From: Amphiscolops sp. MND2022
Taxonomy: Eukaryota
Reading direction: 5' to 3'
Length of the DNA stretch: 64,000 bases
Assembly: GCA_964187785.1 (NCBI GenBank)
Contig: OZ076413.1
Span: 54,870,001 to 54,934,000 of the forward strand
In this document: piece by piece, positions 28,276 through 48,635 of the stretch
Numbering within the stretch: position 1 is the stretch's first letter
Layout of the letters: each line of letters opens with the position of its first letter
Translations under genes and position numbers: made by a program
The notes under the pieces: model-generated
What the model was told of the DNA's origin: nothing
The model's database searches: none
Seen by the model: only the letters and a program-made list of their open reading frames with translations

Positions 28276-28859
28276 ACCTCAATCATTTACTGGCTATCAT
28301 GATTAACGATTAACGCTTAGTTGACATAAGCAGTAAGAATCGTTTCGAATGTCTTGCCCATGCTTCATTTTGTTGGTAAGCAAAAAACTAGATGATCGAT
28401 CGTTGTGTTTCAAAGAACTAAAAATGAACAGCTGTCACTCAACTGCCACTCCCCAGGTTGACCATACTCAGAAATGGTAAATCATACTATGTCATAGCGA
28501 GATCATGGTGAAAAATGATCATCATAATATGGTCATAGTATGGTCATATTATGACTAGCATGGCAACGATTATGGTCATAGTATGAGTGACCATGTTCGA
28601 AAATTTTCAAAAATTCGAAGTCCCCTAGCGGCAAAATTTGAAATTTGAAATACATCAAAAAGTGACTCGTTGGCGCGTTATTTGGTTTTGGAAGATCTAG
28701 GGTTACCTTAATGACCCGGGTAGCATTAAGGACGCTTTTCGGCACCGCGTTTCCTGAAGCCGCTGTGATAGGGTAAGATTTTTGGGAAAAAATTTCAGGA
28801 TTTCAAGATGGAAAAAGGGCTTATTTTAGATATGTATATCAATACAGAGACTAAATCAT

Positions 28860-29298
28860 GCATAATTTGTATACTGTTCACTCTTCCCAGGGTTTTCGAT
28901 GATTTTAGATCAAATTGATCCAGGTTCTAGATCTGATTCCTATTTTAGTTGCTGATTTCCATAATTTTGCAGCTATTTTGCCAAAATTTTAGATATTATT
29001 TTCAATAGAGGCGAAAGTATGCATAACTTAGATTCGTTGTCCTAAAGTTTTCGTTTTTAGATCAAATTGACCCAACTTTTAGATCTGATTCCTATTTCAA
29101 GAGTTGATTTCCATAATTTAGCAGCTATTTTGCCCAAAATTCACATATTATTCTCGATTTAGGGACAAAATTATGCATAATTTAGATACTCTTCGCTGTC
29201 TTCAGAGTTTTCGATGATTTTAGATCAAATTGATCCAGGTTCTAGATCTGATTCCTATTTTAGTTGCTGATTTCCATAATTTTGCAGCTATTTTGCCC
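28860..29298 (+). repeat. About 150-bp degenerate tandem repeat; same family at 41417-41800
   Basis: TTAGATCAAATTGA recurs near 28906, 29057 and 29220, and again after 41417. Confidence 0.85.
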
Positions 29299-29456
29299 AG
29301 ACCACAAGTCGCATAATTCACTTTCTTGCCTGTGTGCTAATTTTTTTTACAAGTTTTTCGAAGCGGAAGATTCTCAGTTTTTCGACAATATCGTGTCAAT
29401 CCAATGTCATAACCTAGGTAGTAACTCTCCCAGTGATGCATATATCACGAAGTCCT

Positions 29457-29477
29457 AATAATAATAATAATAATAAT
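29457..29477 (+). repeat. (TAA)n microsatellite
   Basis: taataataataataataata. Confidence 0.9.
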
Positions 29478-30032
29478 ATGAGACTGGGGAGTCTCCCCCC
29501 TTTTCGGCTTTTTGAGACTTAATTTCGAAAATTTTTAAAAGTCCCCAAAGGGTCCTCCGTTCATTTTTTGATATTTTGCAACAGAATGAACGTTAAAAAA
29601 TCTCAAAGAACCCCCCCCCCTTTCACAGTTTTTGGCCTTGTGAGATTTTTCAAAAGTAAGTATTTTTGTTTAAAAATTAGGTTTTCTCAGGCCCAGCACG
29701 CTATATCCAATTTTTTTTCCAAGACCGGTGTTTTTATATGCGACTTTTTCATCGAAGTCCCCCCCTCAATTTTTCCAAAAAATGAAACGTTTTTCGACTG
29801 TAAAGGACTCGTCAAGGTTTTCGGCACTATGCGACTTCAAAAAAATTGCCGGTGACCTTCAAAAAAAAATTTTGGAAAAATTTCGGAATTTTTTTCAATT
29901 TGGAATAATTTTTTCCTTCAATTTTCTGATTTTGCACATGACGGAGTCAATGTGCATTGCAGTCCAGCTAAGAAAGTTTTTTTTCCACCATAGTCAACTT
30001 CATAATGAGCGTCTTTTAGAAAAAAGCAAAAA

Positions 30033-30103
30033 CCCCACGAGAGATTCGAACCTGCAGCCTCCCGATTGCTCGGCATAAGTGTTGACCACTGTGCCATAGG
30101 AAC
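30033..30103 (-). ncRNA. tRNA-derived (SINE-head-like) Pol III unit
   Basis: A box TGGCACAGTGG, B box GGTTCGAATC, downstream T-runs; acceptor stem poor, so not called a functional tRNA. Confidence 0.6.
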
Positions 30104-31638
30104 GTTATTGAACAAAGTTGAACTGTTGAATATATACGCATGCGATATTAATACGCGTACGTTAATATAGCTATAGTTAAGCTATCTTTAAAATAATCGA
30201 TGTCTTCGTCATGTGTTGCGAAGCACCGCTTCGCCTCTGTGTTTAAGGTTTTCCGTTGAGGAAGATGGGTTGTTTGCTGTTTTCAGTTGGGGAAGAATGG
30301 CTTTTGAGACTTATGCCCATCCCTTCGGGAAATTTTTGGCGCTGTAACTTTGATGAAATTTTAACATAGTCCATTTACTCTTGGTTCTACGTATGATATT
30401 GCTTATTTGGTTTTCAAAAGTTCGCAAGTGTTTGCGAAGCACGGCTTCGCCTCTGTGTTAATTAATTCTAAATCAGTATTTCCGACTCGAAAACATTAGT
30501 TTCGGGGAAGATGTCCCGGACTTTTCTCTAGCTGCATGTTTCTTTCGTAGTTTTTCGTAGGTGTATTGCGTAGGAATCCTTGTAGCAACTTGCGCAGCTG
30601 TATACAGCAGTTTTTCAGCTGTCTCCGATACGGCCTAGAACCTCATACAGCCCTGTATGAAGCTGGCCGCTTGTTAATTGTTTCAATATTGCTCTACTTG
30701 TGTTGTTGTGGTGGTAATTTACTGGTAATTTACTGGTAAATCTGGTTCATTCTGGTATTTGCACACAAGATTAATCTCATCTTACTGCTATGCGTTTGTT
30801 TTTTAAATGTATTATGATTTACTTAGGAGTTACGCCTTTTTCAGATGGCCAGAATAGGAAAGAAAGGCAAGAAAATAGCAGTCTTGATTGCGTCGAACGG
30901 TTTTGTTTCTGTTCGGAAACATTGCAGGAGCAGTTTTAAGAGACTTCACAGACCAGTATTTAGAAAAATTGGGTGGCAGACCTGTGATTGTGTCAACAAA
31001 TGTACTGTGCCATTTCATTTGAACAATTTGGATGGCTGTCAATTAAAATGCTTTGGGGGAAGCGGGGCTAGGTTCCAACACCAGAACAAGAGTTTAACCC
31101 TCAATGGAGCTCTACACGCTGCTTTTGATTGGCGTGTATTTTTATTTATCCTGATTTCATTCAAAATTCTTTGTTTACTAATCGTGGACGACAGAATGAC
31201 GCCATTTCTTCTTCCGAAATGAAAAAACGTTTGCTTGAGGCCAGTGGTGCTCATTTTAACTAGTAAACCTGTTTAGATTATGTGCAGATTTCATTTTGGA
31301 CCACTAAAGATGAAGCGGCCTTAAAATCCCTCAATGAATCCTAAATTCTAAGTGGTCATTGATATCGTCATATATGTCGTGCTCTGTAATAAGGAAAGTA
31401 ATAATAACTACACAAGTAACCGCATGGATGACCTCTTCGTTTTTTAAGGTTAGCTAAATAATCGATTTCATGCCTCACGGCGATTATGACACCTTACTCG
31501 AAAAATTCAAGTTCTAATTCGTTTTTGGTTAGTTCCTTGCATGCTGTTATGAAAAATTGTTTGAATTAAAACTGAATATACACAAAATGAGCATTACCGA
31601 TACAGGCCAACCAACTTTGCCAACGATGCAATATCGAA

Positions 31639-32016
31639 ATGTTTGTTGGAATCTCAAAGAGGCAAACTAAAAATGCCGAAGCTAGGAAGAATTGTGTGTT
31701 TTGGCGTTTGGAGAAATCGAAGCTGCCATTTGACTCCAACGAACGAGAAATCAACAGGGAGATCAAAAATACCCTCTTACAGTGTTCTTTGAGCGAATCT
31801 TTGGAAGTTCATGAGATATTCTTGGGCGGTCTTCATTTCAAGGCTGGGGACCCTTTCCACCAAACAAGGTTTTCAATCAGAGCAACGCTCTCTAGGATAG
31901 TAAGGAGACTCAAGGAAGGGACGTTGCCTCTGATACAGAAAAGACTGACAGGCGCTGAGAAGAAAAAACGGAAAAAACAACGAGCCAGAAGTGAAAGCCA
32001 GCATTTTCAAAATTAG
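31639..32016 (+). CDS. Unknown 125-aa ORF or exon upstream of the SET-transposase
   Basis: ATG start, coding-like composition, basic KKKRKK tract; no recognisable domain. Confidence 0.35.
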   Translation: MFVGISKRQTKNAEARKNCVFWRLEKSKLPFDSNEREINREIKNTLLQCSLSESLEVHEIFLGGLHFKAGDPFHQTRFSIRATLSRIVRRLKEGTLPLIQKRLTGAEKKKRKKQRARSESQHFQN

Positions 32017-32304
32017 TAGAAGTGGAATTTTTGATATTCGTTTTACGGCATCTGTTTTTGCCGGAACTCTTCACGCGCTTTAAACTCTCCCCTTCGTTTA
32101 ACAATCTTTTTCGTCTGCTTATGAGTTTTTTTTCTATTTTTCGCTTTTCTAACTATTCTTTTCTTTGCTTGTGTTTTCCATTTTAGTGCTTATCAACTGC
32201 TCAATCAGTGGGCGAGGTGAAAAATTCTTCTATTGACTGTTTCAATTCACTGAGAGTGTACTGAATGTAGTAAATGGAAATTCTTTAGTCTCACGGTCGA
32301 TAAT

Positions 32305-35300
32305 TTGTTTTTGAAATTTAAGTGTCATGCAATTAGTTTCCGTCCAGTCACTTTGGCTTATTGTGATGGCTTTGCTGCCAAGAAGTTCGTTTATACCACT
32401 GGTCGTACTGCAAGTACATTGATTGAGCTACCGGATTTTTCAACGTTCAGTGAAACGGCAACGAAAAAGGAGTTGGACTTACTGCGCCGCTTAGATGACA
32501 TTTATGCGGAGACATTGAAAGCTGGTTACAGTTTTGTGGCTGATGCATTCGGTGGCCATACCCTCACGACACTGCACCAGAGGTTAGGAGACAATGTTCT
32601 TGCCTTTCCAGTTGGACTGGTCGCTAAAATCAAGCCTAGCCGAAGAGCACCTCTTCGATGATACATCTACCGTTGCTCCCACAGAATTATGCAAATTGCC
32701 CAGACTTTTGGCAGGCACCATTCGTTTCGTCAATTCCTCTTGTGATCATAATTGCCGATATGAGTTCACATCTTCAAATGGAATACCGTGTGTGAGATTG
32801 AAAACTTTGAGAAATATTCAACCAGGAGAAGAGTTAACAGTCTTTTATGGGAAACACTTCTTCGAAACACTTGAATGTCAATGTCCGCATGTACATCTTC
32901 ATGAGCAGGAGTTATCTGATCTTTCTTCCAGTCTGTCAATGTCTCCTCAGTCACGGAACAAAAAATGTAGAAGACCCCGTATTTCCTTGTCGGGGTTTAT
33001 GGCACTCCCTGGTGTAGAGACATCGAAGTCCTATAAAAGAAAAAGAACTGTCCGTTTGAACAATTCTCCCAGAGACTCAGAAGATTTACGCTTACCGCCA
33101 ATGGATGAATCCACTGATCTTTATTCTGAGGATTTTCCAATTGAACATCTCGATGTGGTACAACCGTTAGATTCTTCGACTCCCATTCATCACAACGAAA
33201 ACACTGATGATGCTTTTTTCCACATGGTCTTTTTGCACAATCTTTCCGGTTCGAGCAGTGAAAGATCAGTTGTTACCCAGCATTTGATCGCTGATGCTGA
33301 AATCGGGCTCAAAAACCTCAAAGTGTGTTTAACTGCAAATGGCTCCAAGCATCGGGCATCGGACGCGCTGATGAACGATGTGTTGAAAGTTTTCCGTCGC
33401 CTAAAACCCGACACTGATTTGCCAGGAATAAAAAAATTCAAAAAAGAGAGTCGGAAAACGTTTCTTGAGAACACATACAGCCAGGTTCCTTGTAATTTAG
33501 GTGGGTTGATACCTTTGAGGTTTTCGTTGGAATTGAAAGAAATATGCTGTCGAAATTGGGAAATTTTGGTGGAACGATCTCGGAGTTTAATTTCTAATTC
33601 CAGAAACGACATCAGACTTGGAAATTTTATCAATGGAACTGAAACAGCTATTACGCTGCACTTGATTATTTCGACCGATGGCGTCAAAATCATCCATTCT
33701 TCGGGTAAACATCTCTACCCATTGTGGATAATTATTGCTGATTTGCCTCCGGTGTTGCGTTTTTCTTTTGACAATATTGCTCTCGCGAGTTTGTGGTTCG
33801 GTGATGGCAAACCTGATTTCGAAATTGTTTTCCAGTATGTCCAAAGAGAGATCACAGATCTTAAATTTGTTAGCCACGAGGGTTTTTCGTATGCTGCAAA
33901 TGTAGAATTCGTCTTTCTCAGTGCCGATAATGTTGCCAAAGCTGCAATACTCAACATGAAGCAGTTTAACGGTTATTTTGGCTGTCATCTTTGTGAAGAC
34001 GAAGGCGAAATCGTCTCGCACAGACAGCGAATTTATCCGTGTAACACTGTTATCAAGATGCGGACTTTCGAGTCATATGAGAAAAACCTGTCCGAAGCTC
34101 AAAAACTAGAAGCAGCGGGCTTTGATCTTGGGTCAAAATCTTTCCGCAACCGAACCAAGGGTGTCAAAGGTATTGAACAAAGATATATGTCGAGAATTAA
34201 ATCGATATTTGAACGAGAAAAAAACTGAAATTCATATGGATTCCCTTTTGTGATATGAATTCTGTTTACAACAACAGATTTTTCAAGTTTTTGGATGCTT
34301 TTTCCAAATCAAATGTTTGCACAAAGCTCTATACCCTTAAGGTAGAAGCCCCCTAACTTTGATCACTAAGAGGATGCCTTTCTTCGTGACAATCGATTAC
34401 ATGCACACTGTTTGCTTGGGTGTAGCTAAAAACTTTTTGAATCACATGTACACTTCTTTACAACCCATGGAAAGGAGAATCGTGAACCAAAGAGCCAAAG
34501 GTTTCAAAATTCCGTTTGAGTTTCAACGATCGCTTTGTGGTTTGGACCAAATGTCGCATTTCCACGCAAGTGAATTCAAAACGTGGCTGTTGTATGTCGC
34601 ACCTGTAGTGACGTTGGATTTGTTGGCTGAAAATATCAGTAACTTGTTGTGGAAGTTTTCCTATGCCATCCGAATATTACTTGAAAGTGACAAGCATCTG
34701 ACAGAGTGTGATCAGTTACTCAACGATTTTTGTGCCGGTTTTGCTGCCATCGACAGTGCTGAGCAAACATTCAATTTACACTCCTTGCGTCGTCTCACTT
34801 GGCAAGTTCGAAACTATGGCCCCTTGTGGACAGCATCTTGCTTTGCATTTGAATCGGCCCACCACTCCCTTGTTTCCGCATTCACTGGATCTGTAAACCA
34901 TTTGAGGTTGCTGGTAGAGCGGTACCTGGTCAAGAAGTCACTTCTGAGAACAAATCTTGAAAACGACGCTCTTTTTAATTTGACTTCTGAGTTAATTTCG
35001 GGCCGGAAAAAAATTGGACAAGGACACTTGAAGGATACCGATGATGTTCGAGAACTTTGTAGCCGAGCGTCTTCAGTGTCAGCGAGAGAAGTTCTGAATG
35101 GACTCGCTTTTGATTCAGCCAGTGATACAAAATCTAACTCCAACTCTTTCATTACTTTCTCTCCCATTGGTGCCGACCAACTCATATTCGGTCAAGTGAT
35201 TGCTTTTTTCCGTCGTGGACGACGTAAATTCTGTCTCGTTGAGCTTTACGCTGTGCAAAAACCATTCAAATGTCCTGGTGGCGATCGCTTATCTTGTGCG

Positions 35301-35432
35301 TTTTATCACGGAAAAAGAACCAATGAAAGAATTGATTTACCTTGTGAACGAAATTTGGGAAAACTTATTGTATTCTCCATCGAGCACCAGAACATTTTGA
35401 ATAAATTGTCTTCACACTTTGATCACAATTAG
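32305..35432 (+). pseudogene. SET-domain (Suv4-20/KMT5-like) fused to a CMC/EnSpm transposase; intron 34170-34341; +1 frameshift near 32641
   Basis: SET motifs RFVNSSCDHNC, GEELTVFYG and CQC. Transposase motifs IISTDG, KPDF, AKAAILNMKQFNGYFGCHLC, IDYMH, NYGPLW..SCFAFES. The phase-1 GT..AG intron restores KGVKG-RSPL...IDYMH. Confidence 0.88.
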
Positions 35433-35469
35433 GAAAAAAAACTCGTCTCACTGCGTTTTCTTCCACATA

Positions 35470-36500
35470 TTTTACACTGGACTACATGTTCCAGCATGGA
35501 CCTTTATTTATCTTAGAAAACCATTTTTAGTCCCACAGTCGGCTTAGCTCTAATGCGTTTTTAGCTGACTGCTGGACTGATTTTGCTATCCATCGTTTAC
35601 TCTTGAGTCGGCTTAGCTTCGATGCTTTTTTGGCTGACTCCTGGGAATAACGTTGCATTGGGACAATCTCATTCTTACATTGCTAGTTTTATTATCTATT
35701 TAATTGAATAACTTTTTGTTCAAGCAATAGAGATGACCTTTTTTATTCGCGTTTTTTTCACATATTTTACTGTGGACTACATGTTCCTGCATGCATCTTT
35801 ATTTATCTTTGAAAACCATTTTCAGTCCCTCAGTCGGTGTGACTCTAATGCGTTTTTGGCTGACTGCTGGGCTGAACTTGCTATCGTTTACTCTTGAGTC
35901 GGCTTAGCTTCTATGCATTTTTGGCTGACTCTAGGGAAAAACGTTGCGTTGGTAAAAACTCATTCCAACGTTGCTGATTTTATTATGTTTAATTGGTTTG
36001 AATAAGTTTTTCTTCAAATAATAAAAGTTGGGTGATCAATTTTTTTATTCGTGCGTATATACTTGCTTCTAGATATCGTACCTCTTCGAACGGAAAACGC
36101 AACTTACTGCTTTTGTAGAAAATATGAGCGTCTTGTAAACGTTGCTGTCTCTTTTTGCTATAACTTGAAAGACGACAGGAAAAAATTTCACAAGAAAGCG
36201 TGATGTACACTTTATCTCAGGTAAAGATGACATCACTGCGTTACCAAGCAAAGGTTTTCCTTCCCTTTTTTTGTTGACGGGTTCTACCATGGACCTTTCT
36301 TTTAGAGGTAAACTATTTTTAGTCCTTCAGTCGGCTTAGCTTTGACGCTTTTTTGGCTGACTACTTAGCTGGGTTTGGTTTGCCTGTAAACTCATTCAGT
36401 GAAAATTGTCAATGCTTCATTTAATTGGTTTCATTCACGTGTATCATCCTTCGTTAACTCTTGAGTCGGCTTAGCTTCGATGCTTTTTTGGCTGACTCTT
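35470..36500 (+). repeat. About 295-bp internal repeats containing GAGTCGGC...GCTGACTC hairpins; another copy at about 38350-38668
   Basis: 35521-35830 is highly similar to 35820-36060 and to 38350-38665. Confidence 0.85.
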
Positions 36501-36610
36501 GGGATTGGCGTTGCGATTGTACGCGCTCGTGCTAACGTTTCAAAGAATATTTTCATGAATTGTAGTTGCTTGATTGATCTTGCTTTATTTTCAGACATTG
36601 GTTTAACGTC

Positions 36611-38429
36611 ATGGACAAACGCGAAAAAAGGAGCAATGATACTAGAACGCTTTTGGAGGATGTTGCCAATACTCGTTGGCTGTTCTATTGCCCTGGCGAT
36701 AAACCAGTTTTCATGATTTCTGCAGAAAGCTCAGGATGGCCGAAGGATTTGACGCTGCATCGCAAACTGAGTCTTCAGAAACACGCAAAGATCCAAATCA
36801 GAAATCCTGTCACCAGGAAGTTTCACGAGTGCTCGTTGATCGACAGCGGCACTGAGGAGTTTCTGAGGAAAGTCGAGGCGAAAGGTGCTAAATTGATTTC
36901 CAACATGCAAGAAACGCTGTTGGATTTGAGCGTTTCCTTCACTGGTGAAGAAAACGTTGCGCCAGTTGACACCCAGCCGGAAAGAACTCAACGCTCATAT
37001 AACTCGGAGGAAGAGGACGAGGAGCCACCCCTTAAGCGTGTAAAACAGATTGCGAAACCAAAACCGGTCTTTGAACAATCTCCGATTGTTCTCCATGACA
37101 ACGTAGCTCCTTTGACATCAACTCCTTGCAAATGCGATGGTGGTGAAAAAGTAAGTTCGTGGGGAGTTTTAACGCAAGGTCTATGAATTTGCTTTCTTTA
37201 CTTAGACTTCCACCCAACTGAGAACCCGTTTTGAGGTTTTTGTTGGTGCAAGAGTTGATTCTGAGACTGCTCATCAACTGCGATCTCTGTTTATCTTTTG
37301 TTAACAGCGTATATTTCCATTGTTATATTTTTCAGTGTACTTCTGGCGCAATCCGCGAGACCCTGCAGGTTTTTACCACTACCATGGAGAAGCTGCTGGA
37401 AACGCACAGGGAATGTTGGAGGGAGTATCGCGAGGTAGCGAGGAAGCGAGGAAAGAGCGGAAAGAACGCGAACGCCTGGTAGGTCAATAAAAATCCTTAA
37501 GATGCAAGTTATACTAATTAATCATTCAAGTCTGCCGATCGGCATTATATATTTCGATTAAGATGACAAATTGGGCATTTTATTCACGACGGTATAGTGA
37601 AAAAATATTTCTCTCAAACTGCTCATACTACTTTTCTGCACATTTGAGTTTTGTAGGTTTTGGACATTTGTTTTTAAGTTTTAAGAGGCATTAAGTCATA
37701 CTTAAAATAGGGACTCTGAAACCCCAACTGCATATTTGAAGTATTACTGAAAGTTATGAGACAAGGTTTGTAGATATTCGCTCGATGTGTGCATCTAACA
37801 GCACTTCAATGATTTTTTAGTCAAAGTCTGTTGAGTTCTTCTTCAAGAACGGAAAAGCTGCTGCATTCAACGACGATGTCATTAATGATGCCGACACTGA
37901 AGCAACGTGCTCCAATGATATTTCCGATCTTCGAGAAATTAAATACAAGGGGATAAACTTACGTGAGCTGACGATTCCCTACGAGCCCTCAAAATATGGT
38001 CGGAAGATAGCTGAATACATTTTCGGCAAAAACGCTGAAAGTGAGCTTATTCATTCCATGATAGAGCCTGAAGGAAACAAACCGACCCGTCCGGCAGCTG
38101 ACCTACAGAAGCAAGCTGATTTTAAAGAGCTTGTTTTATGGGCTTATTCAAAGAGAGGCTCTCTAAAAGCGCAATATGCGTATCAACTGGCCCGCAACTC
38201 TGCGAATCAGAGGGGACGAGAATTGAAAGCTGACTTACCCCATGCGAGCGAGAATGCTACTACGTCCAGTAGTCGCAGAGAGAGAGAGCAGCCACTTTTG
38301 ATTTCTTTTTGTTCCTCCCAAATGTCCGATCCTCCAACGGAGACTTGTATTTTTAGTCCCTCAGTCGGAGTAGCGTTGGGTTTTTGGCTGACTGCTGTAC
38401 TGAATTTGTTATGCATCGTTTACTCTTGA
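36611..38429 (+). CDS. Spliced CMC ORF2, probable C-terminal BEN-like domain; exon 1 36611-37150, exon 2 from 37336, last exon from about 37821; later boundaries uncertain
   Basis: AAA|GTAAGT donor and TTTCAG|TGT acceptor in frame. C-terminal YGRKIAEYIFG...RPAADLQK...ARNSANQRGRELK resembles the BEN consensus as I recall it. Confidence 0.6.
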
Positions 38430-40419
38430 GTCGGCTTAGCTTCGATGGTTTTTTGGCTGACTCCTGGGAATAACGTTGCATTGGGACAATCTCATTCTAA
38501 CATTGCTAGTTTTATTATCCATTTAATTGGTTTGAATAACTTTTTGTTCAAGCAATAGAAGTTGGGAGATAACCTTTTTTATTCACGTTTTTTTCACATA
38601 TTTTACTGTGGAATACATGTTCCTGCATGCATCTTTATTTATCTTTGAAATCCATTTTCAGTCCCTCGACTTTAACTGTCCCAGGACCTTGACTGTTCTA
38701 CAAGCTCGAGACCTTCGTTTCGTGTCTGTTACAATGCATTAAACACAAAAGACATAAAGTTTTTACATTTTTGAAAAATTCGACATTTTTGAAATTTTCA
38801 TTTACTACTATCTGTACCCCATATGTCAAAAACGCCACAGAAAAAATTTTTAATTGCTTTAAGTTGGAAAACTTGGTATCCATGGTTTCTGTCGGAAACT
38901 AATTGCTGCCAAACACTTAACAGTTTGCATCCAATGTGGAATTAAAATTTTTTTCGAGGTCTTAGGTGTTTCACAAGGATTTCCAAAATTAGTTTCAATT
39001 TACAAATTGGTCATTTTCAACATAATATTTTCATCCAGGCGTGTCGGCAATAGCTTTTATTCTCAAGAACGGTTGTACTGGCAACGTAGGAACCATTTAT
39101 AGTAAAAGAAACTTTAAAAAAATATTTTCACCCGTTCTTCAGTCATTTTGCACACATTCGGAACGTAGAAATTTTTCGACCGAAATACCCATTTTTTGTC
39201 AGGTCGAAAATTCAAATTCAGCTTTTTAAGCAAAATTATTAACTCTGGCGTAACCAGTGGGGCCCATGATACTCAAAAACACGACTGGGACTGGTATCAG
39301 TTGCTTCAATATCATATGAGACGTGATAAGACGTTATTCAGAGCAAAAGCTCTAAATCGAAGTAAATATCTCGGAAGCTGGGATCACAGTGAAGAGTGAT
39401 ATTATCAAAAGTTAACTCATTTTCGTCAATCACTATGTACAAAGGATGCGTAGGATGAGTTTCAGAACTATAAGGAGGTTTTTGAAGGAATCGGTCTGCT
39501 CAAGGGATGGTATGAATCATTTTTTTCCCAGATAGCACTGTATTTTCCAAAATTTTTAGCCCAATATCTCAAAACACTTCGCAATATACTTTCAATTACT
39601 TTATTCAATGTTTAGAATATAGATGAACACTGTGGTTGATCAGAAACACTCATCTCTTTTGTTTTCCGAAATAATTCCCTTCGCATGTGTTACATTTGTA
39701 GCAGAATAAAAAGCCGAAGCTAAAAAATACGCTATTTTGCTGAGATAGAATGGCATTGATCGTGCCAAAAAAATCTTTAAATACTTCTAACATAACCTTA
39801 CGGACCCAAAATGATTAAAAATAATCACAATGCTGACATGTGCTCTTTCTACGATCCTGGCTGGACAAGTTTTGCATATTCTTCAAGTACCTGTTAGCTG
39901 AATCTTGTGATGGCCTTTCAACTTGGCCTTGTGTCAACTTGAGAAAGCTGTCACATCAAAAAACTGTCAACAAAAAGCCCATTTGTTTATAGGATGTTGC
40001 TGTCGATGCCTAATTTCGTGATTCGATCATATCGTTAGTTCCTTCCATCGGGTCAGATAACGATTGCATTCGGTCTTTGATTAAAAAAAATATAAACTCA
40101 AAGACATTTTTTAAAATTTTTTTGTCGAAGAAAGTACAAATCAAAATGAAAAACACATTTCTCACCCTTCAAAAGCATAACATTTACTTTTCCTAACGTT
40201 ATCGGTCCCACCCTCCCGGTACGGCTTCGCCGTGTCTGTAGTACAACGCCACATTGCGTTCCGACGCCCACCGTCCGTGGGCATGCCGAGGCATGCCCTT
40301 CGACGACGTATGGCAAATTTCTTTTTTTGTGTGCTCCTGAGCGCGGTAGCGGCTAGTTATCGTTATACTCGTAGTTCAATGGTAATTAGTGTAATAGGTT
40401 TTTCGCATATTTTAGACCT

Positions 40420-41416
40420 TCAGTCACCGCGTACTAACGGTTTTCTCGGTTTGTTCTGTGGAAAACGTATTTGGGCTGTGCATATTTTCCGATTGCTTCC
40501 AAGTTATTTTTGAAAAACCTTATCTTAATGTTTTTCGCGTAATCTGTTTATCAAGTAAATGGCATGTTTCAGGCCTTTAGTCACCCGTACTAACGGTTTT
40601 CTTGGTTTGTAGATATATGTTCTGTGGAAAAATTATCTCGGTTGTGCATGTTTTTCGATTGCTTCCGCGTTATTTTTGAAAAACCTAATCTTAATGTTTT
40701 TCGCGTAATCTGTTTATCAAATAAATTTCATTTTTCAGGCCTTTAGTCACCCGTACTAACGGTTTTCTTGGTTTGTAGATATATGTTCTGTGGAAAACGT
40801 TTTTGGGCTGTGCATATTTTTCGAATGCTTCCGCGTTATTTTTGAAAAACCTAATCTTAATGTTTTTCGCGTAATCTGTTCATCAAGTAAATGGCCTGTT
40901 TCAGGCCTTTAGTCACCCGTACTAACGGTTTTCTTGGTTTGTAGATATATGTTCTGTGGAAAAATTATCTCGGTTGTGCATATTTTTCGATTGCTTCAGC
41001 GTTATTTTTGAAAAACCCTTTTTTTAATGTTTTTCGCGTAATCTGTTTATCAAATAAATTTCATGTTTCAGGCCTTTAGTCAGCCGTACTAACGGTTTTC
41101 TTGGTTTGTAGATATATGTTCTGTGGAAAACGTTTTTGGGTTGTGCATGTTTTTCGATTGCTTCCGCGTTATTTTTGAAAAACCTAATCTTAATGTTTTT
41201 CGCGTAATCTGTTTATCAAGTAAATGGCATGTTTCAGGCCTTTAGTCACCCGTACTAACGGTTTTCTTGGTTTGTAGATATATGTTCTGTGGAAAAATTA
41301 TCTCGGTTGTGCATATTTTTCGATTGCTTCCGCGTTGTTTTTGAAACACCTAATCCTAATGTTTTTCGCGTAATCTGTTTATCAAATAAATTTCATGTTT
41401 CAGGCCTTTAGTCACC
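40420..41416 (+). repeat. 166-bp satellite, about 6 copies, with alternating A/B monomers (332-bp higher-order unit)
   Basis: GGCCTTTAGTCA at 40572, 40738, 40904, 41071, 41237 and 41403. Confidence 0.95.
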
Positions 41417-41800
41417 CGGGTTTTCGATGATTTTAGATCAAATTGATCCAGGTTCTAGATCGTATTCCTATTTTAGTTGCTGATTTCCATAATTCTGCAG
41501 CTATTTTGCCAAAATTTTAGATATTATTCTCAATAGAGGCGAAAGTATGCATAACTTAGTTTCGTTGTCTTGAAGTTTTCGTTTATAGATCAAATTGACC
41601 TAGCTTTTAGATCTAATTCCTATTTCAATAGCTGATCTCCATAATTTTGCAGCTATTTTGCCAAAAATTTAGATATTATTCTCATTATTCTCAATAGAGG
41701 CGAAAGTATGCATAACTTAGTTTCGTTGTCTTAAAGTTTTCGTTTTTAGATCAAATTGACCCAGCTTTTAGATCTGATTCCTATTTCAATAGCTGATTTC
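41417..41800 (+). repeat. About 150-bp tandem repeat, same family as 28860-29298
   Basis: GGTTTTCGATGATTTTAGATCAAATTGATCCAGG is identical to the sequence near 28890. Confidence 0.87.
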
Positions 41801-42117
41801 CTTTCAGTATTTCATAATTCTTTTTTTTCAGTTTTTTTAGACCCGTGGAGGCCACGTTCTTGTCGTGGGTCTCGTCAAGTGTGATACTATGTATCTCACG
41901 AGCTGAGAGCCTCCTTAAAAATACAGAATAAGGACCTCGGCAACCTATTTCTGTAAACTTTGTTTACAGGTGGTTGTCATGTCCGACAATTTTCTCCAAA
42001 ACATGATTTCCATATTATGTTCATACTATGAAGCATGATGGATCATAGTATGATCATACTATGGAACATGGTCATTGTGGTAAGGTCTTGGCATGATCAT
42101 GATCATGGAATGACCAT

Positions 42118-42658
42118 TGTTTTGGGGGTAGCTCTCAAGCTAATTCGGAGAAACTCAAAGATAGAGTTCAAACTAGATAGATTGAGGGAACTCAAAGATA
42201 GAGTTCAGGCTAGGGATTGAGGTCTTGTTCTCAAACAACAAGACTAAGATTGATAACGTTTATTGACGATTTCTTATCACGATAACGGTATGAATATAAA
42301 TGATTGAGTTTAGAGACAATAGTGGGGAACTGGTTGTTAGCAGGTTGTTAACCAGCAAATTAGGCATTTAAAGCCAAAGGGGCAACAAAAGGTCTCAGCT
42401 GGTTGTTTACATGTATGTAAAAACAACGTTTACAATAGTGAGCAATGGGTGGTAAATATTGTACATAAAATGAGCAATGTAATTGCTGTCAAGCAAAGTG
42501 ATTGATCAATATTAGGTGAGAGATTAAGTAGACAAAGAGACAAAAAAAGGCACTCTTGCAGATTCGAACTCGCCCAGACCGATTCGAAGGCAAAGATTGA
42601 TCCACTGTGCTAAGTGGAATAAAATTTACTGCGATCGTTGTGGTGTCATGCGCCAACA
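42118..42658 (-). repeat. BEL/Pao 3' LTR (about 541 bp; alternative end at 42226)
   Basis: TGTTGG...AAAACA; AATAAA near 42260; sharp junction with CMC repeats at 42117. Confidence 0.65.
42550..42617 (-). ncRNA. tRNA-like Pol III module inside the BEL LTR
   Basis: A box TAGCACAGTGG, B box AGTTCGAATC, T7 run downstream. Confidence 0.5.
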
Positions 42659-42827
42659 TCCCGCCGGCCATGAAGTGTTAGCTTCATTGAATATATGGTT
42701 AGCACTCGTGCTAATACATTGAAATATTATGAATAGCTAGCACCCGTGCATTGAAATAATATGAATAGTTAGCATCCGTGAATTATACAGACATGAGTTT
42801 GAGTTTAAAGAGGACAAAAAATTTTAG

Positions 42828-42895
42828 TGTTTCGGGGATTCGAACTCCAGACCTTCTGAGGAGGGATTGTTGAGATTACCACTGCACCATCATCA
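42828..42895 (-). ncRNA. tRNA-like Pol III module in the BEL 3' UTR
   Basis: A box TGGTGCAGTGG, B box AGTTCGAATCC, T6 run downstream. Confidence 0.5.
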
Positions 42896-43113
42896 TTCAT
42901 AAGAGATTGGGTATACTTCGGGTAATTGCGTTGAGTGTGTGCAGCTGCAGAAAAATATAAAATATTGGCTGGGTTCTTTTATTCTTCTCTTTACACACTA
43001 AACCTCCTCCCTCGCCCCCCCCTTCATCCCCCCCGTGAGGAAGGAATCCAGATCTGAGCAAAGTTCCCTTAGGACATTGGGAACCTACTCACCAGAGGTG
43101 AGGTAGGAGAGTG

Positions 43114-43201
43114 GGCGTGAGCAGGGCTCGAACCTTGGACCCTAAGGATATCTAGAGGACTAACTAATGCATCGCCTGTTTGCCACTAAGCCAGGACACG
43201 C
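43114..43201 (-). ncRNA. tRNA-like module just after the BEL stop codon
   Basis: A box TGGCTTAGTGG, B box GGTTCGAGCCC, partial acceptor stem GCGTG/CACGC. Confidence 0.5.
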
Positions 43202-43227
43202 ATTTTCGTTGTCAATCATGCTGCTAC

Positions 43228-46200
43228 TCATTGTGTGCATTCATCGTTTGCATTGTGGAGGTCAGTGTTCTTAATTGGTAGACGTCTCAGCTTGCTGAAA
43301 GGTCTTGTGAAATCACCACGCAATGTTCTCACCAATGCCACGCGAGCTAGGCCATCATGACCAAGCTTCAATTGCATCACTCGACCAATACTCCACTGCA
43401 GTGGTGGAATGCCATGGTCTGTGATCAGCACTACGTCATCAACTGAAAGGTTTGCACGCTCTTGTCGCCATTTGCCTCGCGGCTGAAGTGATGCTACATA
43501 CTCAGAAGCCCATCGCTTCCAGAATTGAGAGAGTAGCTGTTGAAGAGCGCGAAATCTTTTTGCTGGATGCCCGCGGGCATCCATCTTCTGCAAACAGGGC
43601 TGTGGGATAGAATCCAATCGGCTGCCATTGACTAGCATTGACGGCGTCAGTGCAAAGATGTCATCAGGGTTGTTTGTGAGAGCCATTAAGGGACGATTGT
43701 TCAAGACTTTTTCTATTTGGCATAGAATAGTTGTCATCTCCTCGTAAGTGAGAATGGAATTGCCCATGACTCTACGTAAGTGGTGCTTCATCGACTTCAC
43801 CGCTGCTTCCCATAGTCCGCCGAAATTGGGTGAGCGAGGAGGAATAAAGAGCCATTCAACGTTGTTGTATGATTGTGCCCCAGCCTTGGCCATCTTCTCC
43901 AATTCGTTGAGGTCACGCCTTGCACCCACGAAGTTGGTTGCATTGTCGGACACAATTTGAATGGGAATGCCTCGTCTTGCAATGAAGCGTCTCAGAGCTG
44001 CCACCATCGCATCTGACGTCAGTGATGATACTGCTTCCAGATGAACTGATTTTGAAGCAAAACATATAAGTACAGCTATGTAACCCTTGACACACTCAGT
44101 TCCATTTTTGAATGTTAGTGGTCCTGCGAAGTCGAGGCCTACACAGGAGAAGGCACGTTCAGGAACCTCAATGCGACTGGAAGGCAGGTCACCCATGAGT
44201 TGCTGTTGGCCCTGATTTGAAGCGGAAGCACGTGACACACTTCTTGATGCACGCTGACGCCTTTTTCATTGCCTGAGTGACCCAGATTTGACGTCTCATT
44301 TCTGCCACTGTTGCTGTGGGACCACCATGCAGGGTTCGTTTGTGGGCATCATTGATTGCAAGTGTGGCCAGTTTGCTTCGATGTGACACCAGCAAAGGGA
44401 ACCGCTGATCGTCAGTCATTGAGTACCCGTGGGCCAATCTGCCACCGACCCTGATGACGCCGTTGTCCATGAATGGGTAGAGGGGTGCTATTGAGCTCTT
44501 CGGGTTGATGAACTCGCCATTTGCTAGTGCTCGATAATTGGCTTCGAAGTTCACTATTTGATCTGCCTTGACAACCGCATGTAAGGCGAGAGCCATTTCC
44601 TCCCGACCAAAGACCGACCTTGCAAATGCATAGAGTTCTTAGCAATTTCACTAGTGAATTGAAATTGTCCAAGTCTACTAACGAATTACTGTGTGAGGTT
44701 AACACTGTCAAGAATTTGACTTCTTGGCGTGCTTCCTCCTTTGTGAGGAGAGTCTGAGGTTGGTCAGGAAAGGATGATCCCAACCACGTGGGTCCTTGGA
44801 ACCAGAGCTTCTGTTGAGCCACTAGCTGCGTTGCTAGCAATCCGCGTGAGCCCAGATCTGCTGGGTTCTCTTCTGAGGGTACGTGAAGAAATTCAGTTGT
44901 TGGCAACATTGACTGAATTTGAGAGACACGGTTGGAGACGAATGTGTGCCATCGAGAGGGATCCGCTTTGATCCACGAGAGTGCGATCGTTGAGTCTGAG
45001 TACAACACTGAGATATTCAGTGCGTGCTTCGATTTTGATAAAGCCCCTTTGACCGCTGTTGCAAGTTTGGCACCAGTGTGTATTGCTAGGAGCTCGAGAC
45101 GAGGGAGAGTTGATGGTTTGATCGGCGCCACCTTGCATTTGGAGGAAATGATGGTTGAAGAGACAATGTCATCTTTGATTGACACCAGATAAACACAAGC
45201 ACCGTAGGCTTTTTCGGAAGCATCACAGAAGACTTGCAAGGAGGCTTCATCGTACAAGTGGGTTGATAGCATCTTCCTGGGTATCTTGAGTTGTGAGAGC
45301 AAGCCCATGCCATCTTTCCAGTTTGTGTATGCTCGTGACACATCGTCTGGGACTGCATCGTTCGACTCAAGATCCAGTTTCCAACACGACTGAATGATGA
45401 TCTTGGCTACTACGAGAATTGGAGCTATGAGGCCAATTGGATCAAAATGCTTTGAAACATCACTGAGTAAAGTTCGTTTGGTAATGATTGAAACATACTC
45501 ACTACTACATGCGTACACGAAGTGATCCTCTAGAGGGTGCCGCGTCAGTCCAAGTGTTTTGATTTGATGGGTTTTGTCGTTGATTTCATAGGCCTTACCA
45601 GCTTCTTGAAGGTCTTTGGGAAGACGAGTGACCAGTTCGGGTTCGTTGCTGCTCCACTTGCGTAGTGGGAGACAGTTCTTGTTGAGGGTTTCAATCAGAT
45701 TGTCTTGAAGCACGCATGCTTCCTCCAGTGTATCAGCCCCACTCAGTAAATCATCAACCCAGAAGTCGTTGAGAATCACATTCACTGTGTTCTGATTGGG
45801 TCTATGATTTTTACCACTCTCTTGAAGTGCTCGGGTTGAATGGTAGGGGAACTGGCAACACCGTACGTTACACGGGTCATGCGCAGTTCTCGGATTTCGT
45901 CCGTCAAGAAATCACGCCACAGAATTCGGTGGAAGTCGCGATCTGATTCGTCTAAGGCCACTTGTCGATACATCTTTGCCACATCTGCCGACAAGGCATA
46001 TTGGTGTAGGCGAAAGCGAATGAGGATGTCGAACACATCGTCTTGTAAGCGAGGTCCAAGCAGTAAGCAATCGTTGAGAGAATAGCCATTTGGGGACTTG
46101 CTGCTAGCATCGAACACGACACGAGGCTTTGTTGTTGTACTATCTTTGAACACACAGTGATGGGGTAAGTAGTAACACAACCCTGAAGTCTGAGGAGCTT

Positions 46201-47895
46201 CTTTCAAGTGACCCATGTCTAGAAGTTCCTTGATGAAGTCACGATACTGCTGCTTCACATCACTGTGATCCTTGAGCTTTCGTTCCAAAGCGAGCAATCT
46301 CTGCTTGGCTGTTTGAAAGTCGTTCGAGGAACGTGCCTCAGACTTGAAAGGAAGATGAACTGTGATGCGGCCGTCATCTGCCACATAGGTCGTCGTATCG
46401 TAATGTTCCACACATTGACGATTTTCTTTGGACATCGGCTTCACTCGAGGAATCTCGTCAACTTCCCAGAACCGAGCAAGATCCAGTTCCACTGCAACTT
46501 GGAATGATTGACATTGGTGGGCAGGCACTTGGGACAACACTCCAGTGACCACCCAGCCGAAGATAGACTTGCGATAGTAAAGCCCACGAGCCTTCCTCCT
46601 TTCGTCCAGAAAGAGATCCTCGTACACATCCGCGCCCAACAACAATTGAACGGGGCCAGGTTGATGGAAGTTTTCGTCAGCTAAAACTACACTTTTCATT
46701 GATTTCAATTGTTTCAAATTAATGAATTGACAGGGTATATTACCTGCAATTGAGTTCAGCACTAGTGCTGTTACCGGCAATTTTTGAGGACCAATCACGA
46801 GATTGACTGACTCCTTTGCTGCTTGTTGCCGTCCACCAATCCCTGAGATCTTCACATCTACTGTTGACCGTGCAAGGTTGAGGTTTGATGCAGCTTCTGC
46901 TGTGATGAAAGATGTTTGAGAACCTGAGTCCAGCAAGGCTCGAAACATCATCGTCTTTGCCGCTGCATCATCTATGCCAACCATTGCTGTTGACAGAAGC
47001 ACAGATGGACCACTGAATGCTGCACCACTCGTCACACCACCTTGCTGCTCGACTGGACGATCAAAGTGCAGTGATGTATGATGCCTCCCGTTGCAAGAAC
47101 GGCAGCTGAATTTCGATGGACAATCAGCCACGAAATGCCGCCCCAGACAGTTCATGCACAATTTGAGGTTCCTCACCACTGCCTTCCTCTCACGCGTTCC
47201 CAACTGCTTGTAGCGATCACACTGAGATATTGAGTGAGACCCATTGCATTCTTTCATCTGACAGCTTGCTGAGTGCTCAACAGTTGAGGGGTATGCTTCT
47301 TGAAGCACCTTCTTGGGCGTCGTCTTGGGGACGGAAGCCTCATGCTGGTCGCCGCTTGATTCCAATGCACGGCTTCGTCTATCCATGAATGTAGTTAACT
47401 CCTTGAATGTTAACACATCTGTGCCAGGATGAGCCAATTCAAATTGCTTCCTCGACTCAGCATCAAGTTTCTCCAGCAGCCAGTACACAAGTATTGCATC
47501 CCATTGATCAACAGGAAGCCCTAAAGCTTCTAGTGCTTGCACATGTTCATTGGTCGACTCCCGTAGCTTGCGCAGCTCGACACTTGAGTCCTTCTTGATG
47601 ACTGGTAGGGCATGAATTGCCGCCAAGTGCGCCTTCACGATTGATCGCTTGTTGTTGTAGCGCTCCTCTAACTTACGCTTGGCGATGTCGTAATTTGTAT
47701 CAGTGACCAACAAAGATGAAACTATCTGAGCTGCATCACCCTTCAGTGCCAGCTTGAGGTATGATAGCTTCTCAACATTGGTCATGTCACGTTTGCTGTC
47801 AACCAAGGTTGTAAATTGGTCCCAGAAAGAGACCCACTGCGTATATTCGCCACTGAATGAGGGAAGGGTCAGCTTGGGGAGCTTTGTAGTCAGGC
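43228..47895 (-). pseudogene. BEL/Pao gag-pol split by frameshifts (gag with Cys/His knuckles, protease, RT, RNase H, integrase)
   Basis: KLPKLTLPSFSG; LLDSGSQ; ADVAKMYRQ; FWVDDL; VFCDASEKAYG; TIPRLELL-like motif; GLDFAGP; SDNATNF; WEAAVKS; FWKRWASEY. Confidence 0.93.
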
Positions 47896-48635
47896 TGCCA
47901 CTTGATCATGATCATAGTATGATTTTAGTATGATCATAGTATGGTGAGTATGTTGGGTCAACCTGGGTCGTACGAAAAACCGCTCGGAGATGATTATAAA
48001 AAATAAAAGAAAGCGATGAAATAAAACCATGAACTTTTGGTTTTCATGAACTTCAAGATAAACATCGGAAATTTTCAGCTTAGGACTGCTGAATCAAATT
48101 ATCCCACGCCCATCTTAGTTTGACCCTAACTTTAGTTCCTGTTAACTGAACCTCCGCCGCCAATAAAGTTCCTCCAACATTACAACATTTTTGCTCGAAC
48201 TTCACGTACGGAAAGAAGGATTAAAAGATAAAACTATACCATGAATAACTCTAATCATATCTTTACAAACATCCACAAAAAAATTACCAACACCCCCGTG
48301 AAAAATTCTTCCTCCTATTCAGTTATTTCAACTGCTTTAATGTTCTCACTACTAGAAAAATCTTGGTCGCCCAATATGATGCTATCATTTCTTCAAAATT
48401 TTTCAAAACGGTCGGACAATATAATCATGATATAACCATCTTCTTCCAGTTGATGATATAACCATTTCATTTCAATGATCAATTTGCTTAGACACTAGTG
48501 TACACCTCTCCCAGAACAGTTTATCATACTTTGTATTCATCAAATAATATTGATTTGTAAAGCACTTTTGATTTGTACTACCACCACAACGGATAATAAA
48601 GTCTTCGTCACTAGTTGTTCCCTGAAAGACCTAAA

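Follow-up and report, generated by a model that had tools for sequence, protein, structure and literature searches.

Does the open reading frame in which a SET domain runs directly into a transposase, within the 64,000-nucleotide stretch of Amphiscolops sp. MND2022 DNA analysed here (the window), reflect an accident of one locus, or is it the remnant of a protein that a transposon family has kept? A first-pass annotation had proposed that a Suv4-20/KMT5-like SET domain is fused in frame to a CACTA-type transposase, and that the transposon had captured the SET. The open frame is present as described, at 32594–34228 (544 aa), and joins the C-terminal half of the SET to a linker and the N-terminal half of the transposase; residues 32–86 match Pfam SET (E 4.6e-11, 43.5 bits, cut-off 22.4), and residues 348–473 match DUF1258 weakly, at 28.9 bits and below the cut-off of 33.1. 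The N-terminal half of the SET lies in a different frame, in the ORF at 32305–32661. Searched alone it has no match in Pfam or PDB, and a match appears once the two halves are joined, as they are in sister copies. The extra base suspected near 32641 proved to be exactly one additional C at 32640/32641 when the DNA was aligned with the 97.7%-identical sister copy L001, and the rejoined SET sequence agrees with sister proteins P0002, P0003, P0004, P0006 and P0007, which read '...KIKPSEEHLFDD...' unbroken. Position 34169, where the annotation had ended the fusion, is the last base ahead of a predicted intron, beyond which the transposase runs on to 35432. The gene is laid out as follows.

32332–32334, plus strand: start codon position, ATT here and Met in sister and distant proteins (MSFRP versus ISFRP in the window)
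32332–32902, plus strand: Suv4-20-like module with N-terminal helical domain, SET and post-SET (C-x-C-P...H) and a +1 frameshift inside, recognised by Pfam SET, PDB profile search and AlphaFold/Foldseek
32640–32641, plus strand: one extra C (frameshift) within the SET, the sole indel of the SET part relative to L001; intact copies read S-E-E-H
32732–32752, plus strand: SAM-pocket motif N-S-S-C-D-H-N, canonically N-H-x-C-x-P-N, defined by alignment of 66 family members
32903–33436, plus strand: poorly conserved linker with basic clusters (dN/dS 0.42 versus 0.12 in the flanking domains)
33437–34169, plus strand: N-half of the transposase, with the first D at 33677, the second D at 33926 and C(2)C at 33983–33994; columns invariant against 10 relatives, DUF1258 28.9 bits
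34170–34341, plus strand: predicted intron, GT..AG, phase 1; the junction GVKG/RSPLTLI...DYMH fits uninterrupted relatives
34342–35432, plus strand: C-half of the transposase, with H(3)H at 34779–34793, the candidate catalytic E at 34851 and the stop at 35430 (dN/dS 0.076)

As deduced from the sequence, the transposase is one polypeptide of ~975 aa in which a Suv4-20-type module (helical N-domain, SET and a putatively Zn-binding post-SET) is followed by a loose basic linker and a DDE transposase. L002, a subfamily copy 70% identical to the window element, has an intron at the equivalent place whose sequence has diverged. Basic runs are found in the linker of most relatives; the idea that they form an arginine anchor was dropped, as the runs occur in most members but are not alignable. 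The window copy is unable to make the protein: it has lost its ATG and carries the frameshift, a histidine at 32747 in place of the near-invariant Pro of C-x-P-N, and an arginine at 34791 in place of an invariant transposase histidine, the second of H(3)H. The last motif, HSLRRL in the window, is HSLRHL in L001, L002 and the distant relatives, HSLKHL being one of its variants there. The ATT start, the Pro-to-His and the His-to-Arg changes are three lesions that the first-pass annotation did not contain.

The closest SET family is Suv4-20, by sequence and by predicted fold. With the C-terminal half of the SET alone, a PDB search placed SUV420H2 and SUV420H1 as the best solved relatives (E 2.4e-7), ahead of ASH1L. 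A profile built from six family members extended the separation, with SUV420H2 at E 2.3e-16, the SUV420H2/H1 entries ranging from 2e-16 to 1e-14, and ASH1L, the next family, at 8.6e-7 (58–63 bits for SUV420H1/H2 versus 32 for ASH1L). An AlphaFold model of residues 1–215 of the sister protein P0004, computed from a 66-sequence alignment, reached a pLDDT of 87.8 and replaced an earlier prediction from 6 sequences (pLDDT 51). The top 15 PDB matches of this model in Foldseek were all SUV420H1/H2 (TM 0.60–0.72, up to 237 columns), and the alignments with 3rq4 and 4au7, at TM 0.70–0.72 over 237 columns, included the family-specific N-terminal helical domain, whereas SETs of other types gave a TM of at most 0.47 (MLL3 0.41). 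In a search of 1.84 billion proteins, the tellingly named clusters outside the transposon-type SETs were KMT5B of Biomphalaria and Suv4-20 of Orchesella.

The sequence also supports assignment of the downstream domain to the CMC/CACTA-type transposases, in line with the original call. Because the window's own transposase falls under the Pfam cut-offs (28.9 versus 33.1 bits), this class assignment rests on relatives and motifs. P0088 matches Transposase_21 at 42 bits (cut-off 28.6), P0123 matches DUF1258 at 51 bits, and P0123, P0053 and P0055 all lie above the DUF1258 cut-off; across the full-length members, Pfam finds a SET together with DUF1258 or Transposase_21 in 8 of 9. The series D, D, C-x2-C, H-x3-H, E is invariant in 12 full-length members, the window's second His being the Arg noted above. 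[quoted passage not shown] The ends and internal features of the element that encloses the gene, together with its other coding parts, are these.

28450–28451, no strand: left target-site duplication, TC at both ends
28452–28463, plus strand: 5' terminal inverted repeat CCCAGGTTGACC, 12 bp, where the similarity to L001 and L002 begins exactly; reverse complement of 47956–47967
28846–29299, no strand: subterminal tandem repeats, 152-bp unit, 2.9 copies (TRF), recurring near the 3' end at 41420–41801
31639–32016, plus strand: upstream conserved coding block, a 125-aa ORF with 76% amino-acid identity to L002 and dN/dS 0.085
36611–38228, plus strand: second conserved gene of at least 3 coding blocks, with 83% and 72% amino-acid identity to L002 and dN/dS ~0.08
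40452–41418, no strand: internal tandem array, 166-bp unit, 5.8 copies (TRF)
41420–41801, no strand: 3' subterminal repeats of the family at 28846–29299 (blastn against L001 and L002)
42118–47902, minus strand: nested BEL/Pao LTR-retrotransposon fragment inside the 3' part of the element (Peptidase_A17 E 3.5e-41, plus DUF1759, DUF5641 and rve)
47956–47967, plus strand: 3' terminal inverted repeat GGTCAACCTGGG, pairing with 28452–28463
47968–47969, no strand: right target-site duplication, TC at both ends

The element spans 28452–47967, or ~13.7 kb once the nested BEL/Pao insertion, which is missing at the corresponding point in L001 and L002, is subtracted. Inverted ends of 12 bp and 2-bp target duplications are present in all three copies (window, L001 and L002), alongside subterminal repeats, and the duplications differ among them (TC in the window, GG in L001, GT in L002), marking three independent insertions; the chance expectation for three matching 2-bp duplications is ~2e-4. 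The 2-bp duplication and the DUF1258 match presumably point to the Mirage branch of CMC. Neither the upstream ORF nor the second gene has a Pfam match, atlas searches gave weak leads only, and the two were not found when sought in distant loci of the family. The element resembles CMC transposons in its C(2)C/H(3)H DDE core, its 2-bp target duplication, its subterminal repeats, its large size and its possession of more than one gene (PMC12730594). It departs from them in its termini, which in all three copies are CCCAGG...CCTGGG rather than the usual CA...TG (CACTA), and in the SET module at the N-terminus of its transposase. Taken as a whole, 28452–47967 is very probably best explained as a dead member of the CACTA/Mirage/Chapaev (CMC) group, a DNA transposon of animals that moved by cut-and-paste; it is the nested BEL/Pao element that points to an animal host.

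Copies elsewhere show that the fusion is not peculiar to this locus. Checked for an intact frame, other copies retain the SET and read straight through it: the fusion is unbroken in P0002, P0003 and P0008, and an uninterrupted SET-linker-transposase ORF occurs in copies at 94%, 87%, 60% and 30% identity. With E below 1e-10 as the limit, the family numbers 355 cluster representatives. Outside the family of the window, one protein joins SET and transposase in another 24 clusters (50% identity), whose representatives match both the SET profile and the window transposase; 13 of the 24 cover both transposase halves, in proteins of 754–1108 aa. All these relatives are unprocessed ORFs, called on assemblies that have no annotation. 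Both domains show selection: dN/dS is 0.12 in the SET and 0.12 in the transposase N-half, falls to 0.076 in its C-half (exon B) and rises to 0.42 in the linker. One relative, the P0123 family, appears to have been active recently, judging from an intact 1035-aa ORF on at least 4 different contigs of another assembly; copies of the P0123-type element align over >18 kb and include long tandem arrays, and no inverted match to the 3' end was found within the 10 kb examined. The ORF downstream of P0092 has no match in Pfam or PDB. None of the 20 clusters looked up carries a name, and a word-based search with the 12-member alignment returned only 5 matches, none of them named.

The tree of the SETs is unrooted and poorly resolved (61 of 122 forks open). 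On it the named KMT5 proteins group in a starred clade of 22 rows (SH-aLRT 99), none of them transposase-fused, and another starred split separates this cellular clade from that of the window. A small SET clade bears C2H2 fingers. The distribution of the fused ORFs and the selection on them indicate that a large transposon family has this fusion as its selected and probably ancestral layout. The proposal of a single fused protein stands, since SET matches were found, other copies keep the SET and the single exon and ORF leaves no room for separate transcripts. The proposal that a transposon had captured a KMT5-type SET stands in part: the fusion is real, but because it is family-wide and its SETs fall outside the cellular KMT5 clade, it is not a recent capture of a host KMT5 by this element.

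The first-pass annotation had also noted NSSC where NHxC is canonical, and had suggested that activity might be altered. The substitution is real; near relatives read NSSC or a close variant (NSPC in P0002, NSLC in P0010), and the window's N-S-S-C-D-H-N differs from the N-S-S-C-x-P-N of its clade only in the Pro-to-His lesion. When other copies were compared for His versus Ser, both were found: the second position of the motif is Ser in 39, His in 20 and Ala in 6 of 66 aligned SETs, and the Pro at its sixth position is kept in 60. The His and Ser states have switched at least 10 times on the SET tree, and 9 of the 20 SETs that keep the canonical His are transposase-fused proteins. By these counts NSSC is a lineage trait in a family where His and Ser alternate, and the His-to-Ser change appears to be tolerated in the window's lineage. 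The rest of the active site has changed little. Ser112 and Cys182 are found in all 66 members, Asn134, Cys137 and Cys184 in 65 and Tyr172 in 64, and a G-x-G-like motif is nearly invariant. The window retains both the catalytic Tyr (Tyr172, in E-L-x-x-x-Y) and Ser112, which aligns with the Ser of D-F-S in SUV420H2, S251 in the numbering of PMC10697951, next to the H4-binding strand 252–256 of SUV420H1. In the post-SET, the C-x-C formed by Cys182 and Cys184 is near-invariant, a third Cys (C-x-C-x-x-C) is present in part of the family, and the window's clade has a conserved P...H.

How, then, should the fusion be explained? The out-of-frame N-half of the SET and the lost start codon in the window would suit a chance juxtaposition, whether a host KMT5 fragment taken up by one copy (pack-type capture) or a SET pseudogene beside a transposase, but the uninterrupted fused ORFs at 94%, 87%, 60% and 30% identity, the 24 further clusters, the purifying selection on the SET and the placement of the transposon SETs outside the starred cellular KMT5 clade refute this account and leave it barely conceivable. 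Host genes that combine a SET with a transposase are known, SETMAR among them, and the locus might by analogy be a domesticated gene in which a host SET is fused to an immobilised transposase and serves the host. Such domestication was rejected as highly improbable: the gene is enclosed by inverted ends, 2-bp duplications and subterminal repeats, several copies lie at separate loci, each with its own inactivating lesions, and an intact copy is found on at least 4 contigs of another assembly.

What the SET does for the transposase is a question on which we are more guarded. It would contact the H4 tail of nucleosomes during transposase action and would most likely remain able to methylate H4K20, or a comparable lysine, close to where the element is excised or inserted; DNA breakage would thereby be tied to a mark with roles in double-strand-break repair, origin licensing and heterochromatin. 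In full, we tentatively suggest an unannotated animal CMC family with an active H4K20 methyltransferase tethered to its transposase, in which H4K20me2/3 at the donor or target site would recruit 53BP1- or ORC-type readers for repair of the excision break, or would silence the new copy, and in which the His-to-Ser change would mark a SET cofactor pocket of a new type that has stayed active; taken with all its parts, this is rather unlikely. A serious possibility, if short of an even one, is that the SET is catalytically dead and acts as a chromatin tether or reader (of the H4 tail or nucleosome, steering integration or holding the transposase) or as a decoy for host factors. Loss of the N-H-x-C His to Ser or Ala, in a position that switches as if catalytic constraint had been released there, favours a dead SET, as do the non-catalytic chromatin functions of SUV420H1 indicated by the titles of PDB entries 8t9f and 8t9h. 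Against it, near-invariance extends to the catalytic Tyr and the SAM-binding Asn, to the G-x-G-like motif and the Suv4-20 Ser, and to the putative Zn ligands; constraint on the SET equals that on the DDE core (dN/dS 0.12), and the canonical His survives in transposase-fused proteins. It is improbable that the SET instead methylates a non-histone substrate, such as its own transposase or a repair protein of the host, and so regulates transposition. The title of PMC2566874 reports automethylation as a regulator of the SET-transposase protein Metnase, and the H4-contacting strand is partly lost in the family, the position of the Tyr of S-I-M-Y-S-T in SUV420H2 (Y254 by PMC10697951 numbering) being variable; yet the whole Suv4-20 architecture is retained, including the family-specific N-domain, and the window's clade keeps the Ser and Thr on either side of the H4-binding strand.

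The chromatin tools known from transposons include chromodomains, TET/JBP, DNMT and, as accessory ORFs, SET genes. If a DDE transposase itself bore a Suv4-20-type writer, the cutting and pasting of DNA would be linked physically and directly to one particular histone mark. This large family is seemingly invisible to annotation, and its natural intact ORFs open three questions: whether a transposase marks its own substrate chromatin, how H4K20 methylation relates to the repair of transposon-induced breaks, and whether a SET pocket can work with Ser in place of His. A literature search found no paper on a fusion of a Suv4-20-type SET with a CMC transposase.

Known systems resemble the fusion in one part or another. 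The predicted module shares with Suv4-20 (KMT5B/KMT5C; PDB 3rq4, 4au7, 3s8p, 4bup) the order of N-terminal helical domain, SET and a putatively Zn-binding post-SET, and keeps the catalytic Tyr, the SAM-binding Asn, the active-site Ser and the C-x-C. It differs in its low identity (~20%), in the Ser that replaces the N-H-x-C His in the window's clade, in a putative third post-SET ligand that in this clade is His rather than Cys, and in having a transposase in place of the long C-terminal tail of KMT5. SETMAR/Metnase, the primate fusion of a SET with the Hsmar1 mariner transposase, likewise has an N-terminal SET and a C-terminal transposase in one protein. That protein, however, is encoded by a single-copy host gene without functional transposon ends, which arose when a dead mariner was captured as an exon and whose SET is of a type other than Suv4-20, whereas here the SET belongs to a transposon's own transposase, of another superfamily, in a multi-copy, mobile element with terminal inverted repeats and target-site duplications. 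The family is a live-transposon counterpart of the domesticated SETMAR fusion. Finally, SET genes, which the Bostrychia preprint classes as accessory to the element, occur in HarbingerS and Phytophthora MuDR elements (Kojima and Jurka 2014, as cited in PMC12730594), in Helitrons, and in Plavaka PAG2 of the red alga Bostrychia, where the SET is accompanied by a DNA methylase domain (bioRxiv 10.1101/2025.02.11.637652). Like these, the present element is mobile and encodes its own SET protein, which presumably acts on chromatin; unlike these elements of oomycete, algal and other hosts, it resides in the genome of an animal, and its SET is of Suv4-20 type and shares one reading frame with the transposase.

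The SET domain and the transposase belong to a single gene, and their fusion is real, ancient and was selected during the spread of the family. Both reading frames claimed in the first-pass annotation are present, one of 118 aa at 32305–32661 carrying the SET N-half and one of 544 aa at 32594–34228. The expected SET match was obtained with the longer ORF, whose residues 32–86 match Pfam SET (E = 4.6e-11, 43.5 bits, cut-off 22.4) and which, among solved structures, is closest to SUV420H2 and SUV420H1 (E = 2.4e-7 to 3.6e-6), with ASH1L after them. A DUF1258 match in residues 348–473 is weak (28.9 bits, under the cut-off of 33.1), and the 118-aa ORF by itself matched nothing in Pfam or PDB. An intron contains the stop at 34228, which accounts for the conservation of this stop: exon A ends at 34169 (AAAG/GTATTG), exon B starts at 34342 after CTTAAG, the spliced protein reads GVKG/RSPLTLITKRMPFFVTIDYMH across the junction, and the stop codon of exon B is at 35430–35432. 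The subfamily copy L002 (~70% identical) carries an intron of strongly diverged sequence at the identical place, and alignment shows the same protein stretch unbroken in distant full-length relatives. Without lesions the gene would encode about 975 aa.

A protein search of an ENA assembly recovered sister proteins that are 94%, 87%, 80%, 60%, 56% and 54% identical, and one further relative (P0008, 30%) from a different data set, Logan. A Met start and an unbroken SET N-half, SET C-half and linker are found in the sister proteins P0002, P0003, P0004, P0006 and P0007, and the transposase follows in the same reading frame in P0002, P0003 and P0008; an intact frame through SET, which the annotation had proposed to look for, is present in these other copies. 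Where the window shifts frame, the sister proteins read '...KIKPSEEHLFDD...', and comparison with the DNA of L001, the locus encoding P0002 (97.7% identical), confirmed the inferred single extra base as one additional C at 32640/32641. Codon 32332 is ATT in the window and the ATG start in other copies, His (32747) replaces the Pro that is nearly invariant in C-x-P-N, and the second His of the transposase H-x3-H is Arg (34791), although L001, L002 and every one of the 11 distant relatives whose H-x3-H could be placed keep it as His. With a nested retrotransposon insertion included, these five lesions make the window copy a wreck. L001 has lesions of its own, an 84-bp in-frame linker deletion and an additional T where exon B begins (L001 10879 and 11939), and neither of these two near-identical copies is intact.

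Comparison with L001 and L002 also placed the ends of the element, which is flanked by 2-bp target duplications that are distinct in each of three insertions (TC in the window, GG and GT). Its features are as follows.

28452–47967, whole element, with termini CCCAGGTTGACC and GGTCAACCTGGG
both element ends, subterminal repeats of a 152-bp unit
internal, array of a 166-bp unit
30872–31135 and 31639–32016, plus strand, upstream coding blocks
36611–38228, plus strand, downstream second gene of at least three coding blocks (36611–37186, 37330–37494 and 37893–38228)
42118–47902, minus strand, nested BEL/Pao LTR-retrotransposon fragment in the element's 3' part

Conserved coding regions besides the SET-transposase gene number two, one upstream and one, multi-exon, downstream. 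The upstream block 31639–32016 is 76% identical in amino acids to L002 (dN/dS 0.085), and the region has no domain match in Pfam; the upstream blocks probably form a separate gene, because distant full-length relatives begin at the SET Met. The second gene is 83% and 72% identical to L002 in amino acids (dN/dS ~0.08), with no Pfam match and only weak atlas leads (BEN, DUF4806). Bases 42118–47902, missing from L001 and L002, encode Peptidase_A17 (E = 3.5e-41), a gag-like DUF1759, an aspartyl protease, DUF5641 and rve; a search within this insertion for LTRs of at least 40 bp found none. The nested fragment also points to a metazoan host, BEL/Pao elements not being known outside animals.

The assignment of the SET domain to the Suv4-20/KMT5 type was borne out by profile and by fold. 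A six-member family SET profile matched SUV420H2/SUV420H1 in PDB at E = 2.3e-16 to 1.3e-14 (57–63 bits), against 8.6e-7 (32 bits) for the next family, ASH1L. An AlphaFold model of residues 1–215 of a sister protein (66-sequence alignment; pLDDT 87.8, pTM 0.82) had SUV420H1 or SUV420H2 as all of its top 15 PDB fold matches (TM 0.60–0.72, up to 237 columns), against TM 0.41 for the next fold, MLL3. These alignments take in the N-terminal helical domain, which is unique to the Suv4-20 family (PMC10697951). Conserved across 66 SETs are Ser112 and Cys182 (66 each), Asn134, Cys137, Asn140, Phe177 and Cys184 (65 each) and Tyr172 (64). Ser112 pairs in the profile alignment with the Ser of the SUV420H2 D-F-S motif; its SUV420H1 equivalent would be S251, adjoining the H4-binding strand 252–256 (numbering of PMC10697951).

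The call of a CACTA-type transposase is likewise supported. Invariant in alignments with full-length relatives are D (33677), D (33926), C-x2-C (33983–33994), D-Y-M-H, H-x3-H and E (34851), which match the signature of the CMC group, whose target duplications are 2–5 bp (PMC12730594). Pfam bears this out for the family as a whole: among related proteins, P0088 matches Transposase_21 (42 bits, cut-off 28.6), and DUF1258 is matched above its cut-off by P0123, P0053 and P0055.

The fusion is a family trait. An exhaustive SET-profile search of 1.84 billion representative proteins returned 1953 matches at E ≤ 1e-3 and 355 at E ≤ 1e-10, and in many of the best 150, most of the strongest included, the match covers the N-terminal extension (from profile position 7–8). 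Among the matches listed, and excluding the window's own family, 24 also matched the window's transposase by BLAST, 13 of them in both halves (proteins of 754–1108 aa). Named cellular KMT5 proteins (Biomphalaria KMT5B, Orchesella Suv4-20) appeared only at about E = 1e-13. In an unrooted tree of 125 SET regions, half of whose forks are unresolved, cellular KMT5 forms a well-supported clade (SH-aLRT 99) with no transposase-fused members, and the fused proteins are dispersed over the rest. Between the two subfamilies SET and the transposase N-half each have a dN/dS of 0.12 and exon B one of 0.076, against 0.42 in the linker, ratios that are rough, synonymous sites being close to saturation. In other assemblies, four or more contigs carry intact 1035-aa ORFs of the related P0123 family at 97–99% DNA identity, which points to recent activity of that family.

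A small clade (P0092, at L006 4934–6532, and P0135) has the same SET type followed by C2H2 zinc fingers in place of the CMC transposase; a 419-aa ORF just downstream of P0092 (L006 6618–7877) has no match in Pfam or PDB. Downstream of P0025, an intact 995-aa SET-transposase ORF, lies an ORF (L004 11668–12333; GCA_013332895.1, JAAUXW010006734.1) with a weak GDSL/SGNH hydrolase match (23.7 bits, under the cut-off). The P0123-family element is very large, its copies (L005, L007, L008) aligning over more than 18 kb at 97–99% identity, with long arrays of ~340-bp tandem repeats downstream of the SET-transposase ORF; no element ends were found in the flanking sequence covered at these loci.

Chance juxtaposition and host domestication are both excluded by the other copies, the element ends and the selection pattern. 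The SET module may engage nucleosomes and, judged from its sequence, probably still methylates, because all catalytic positions but the His are conserved and its constraint equals that of the DDE core. Its main competitor is a module without catalysis that serves as a tether or reader, which is favored by the lability of the N-H-x-C His position: this residue, Ser in the window, is Ser 39 times, His 20 times and Ala 6 times among the 66 SETs of the family, with at least 10 switches of state on the SET tree.

In the literature searched, no description was found of a CMC transposase joined to a SET of Suv4-20 type, an earlier account in Repbase Reports being possible, and none of the 20 family clusters looked up has a name or an nr/UniRef accession. 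The element's termini deviate from the usual CA...TG of CMC elements. Two post-SET forms occur, the C-x-C-x-x-C of KMT5 and, in the window's clade, C-x-C-P...H instead. SETMAR is a published host SET-transposase fusion. Two sources describe SET carried by other transposons, HarbingerS and Phytophthora MuDR (PMC12730594) and Helitrons and Plavaka PAG2 (bioRxiv 10.1101/2025.02.11.637652); in these, unlike the fusion described here, SET is an accessory gene of the transposon.
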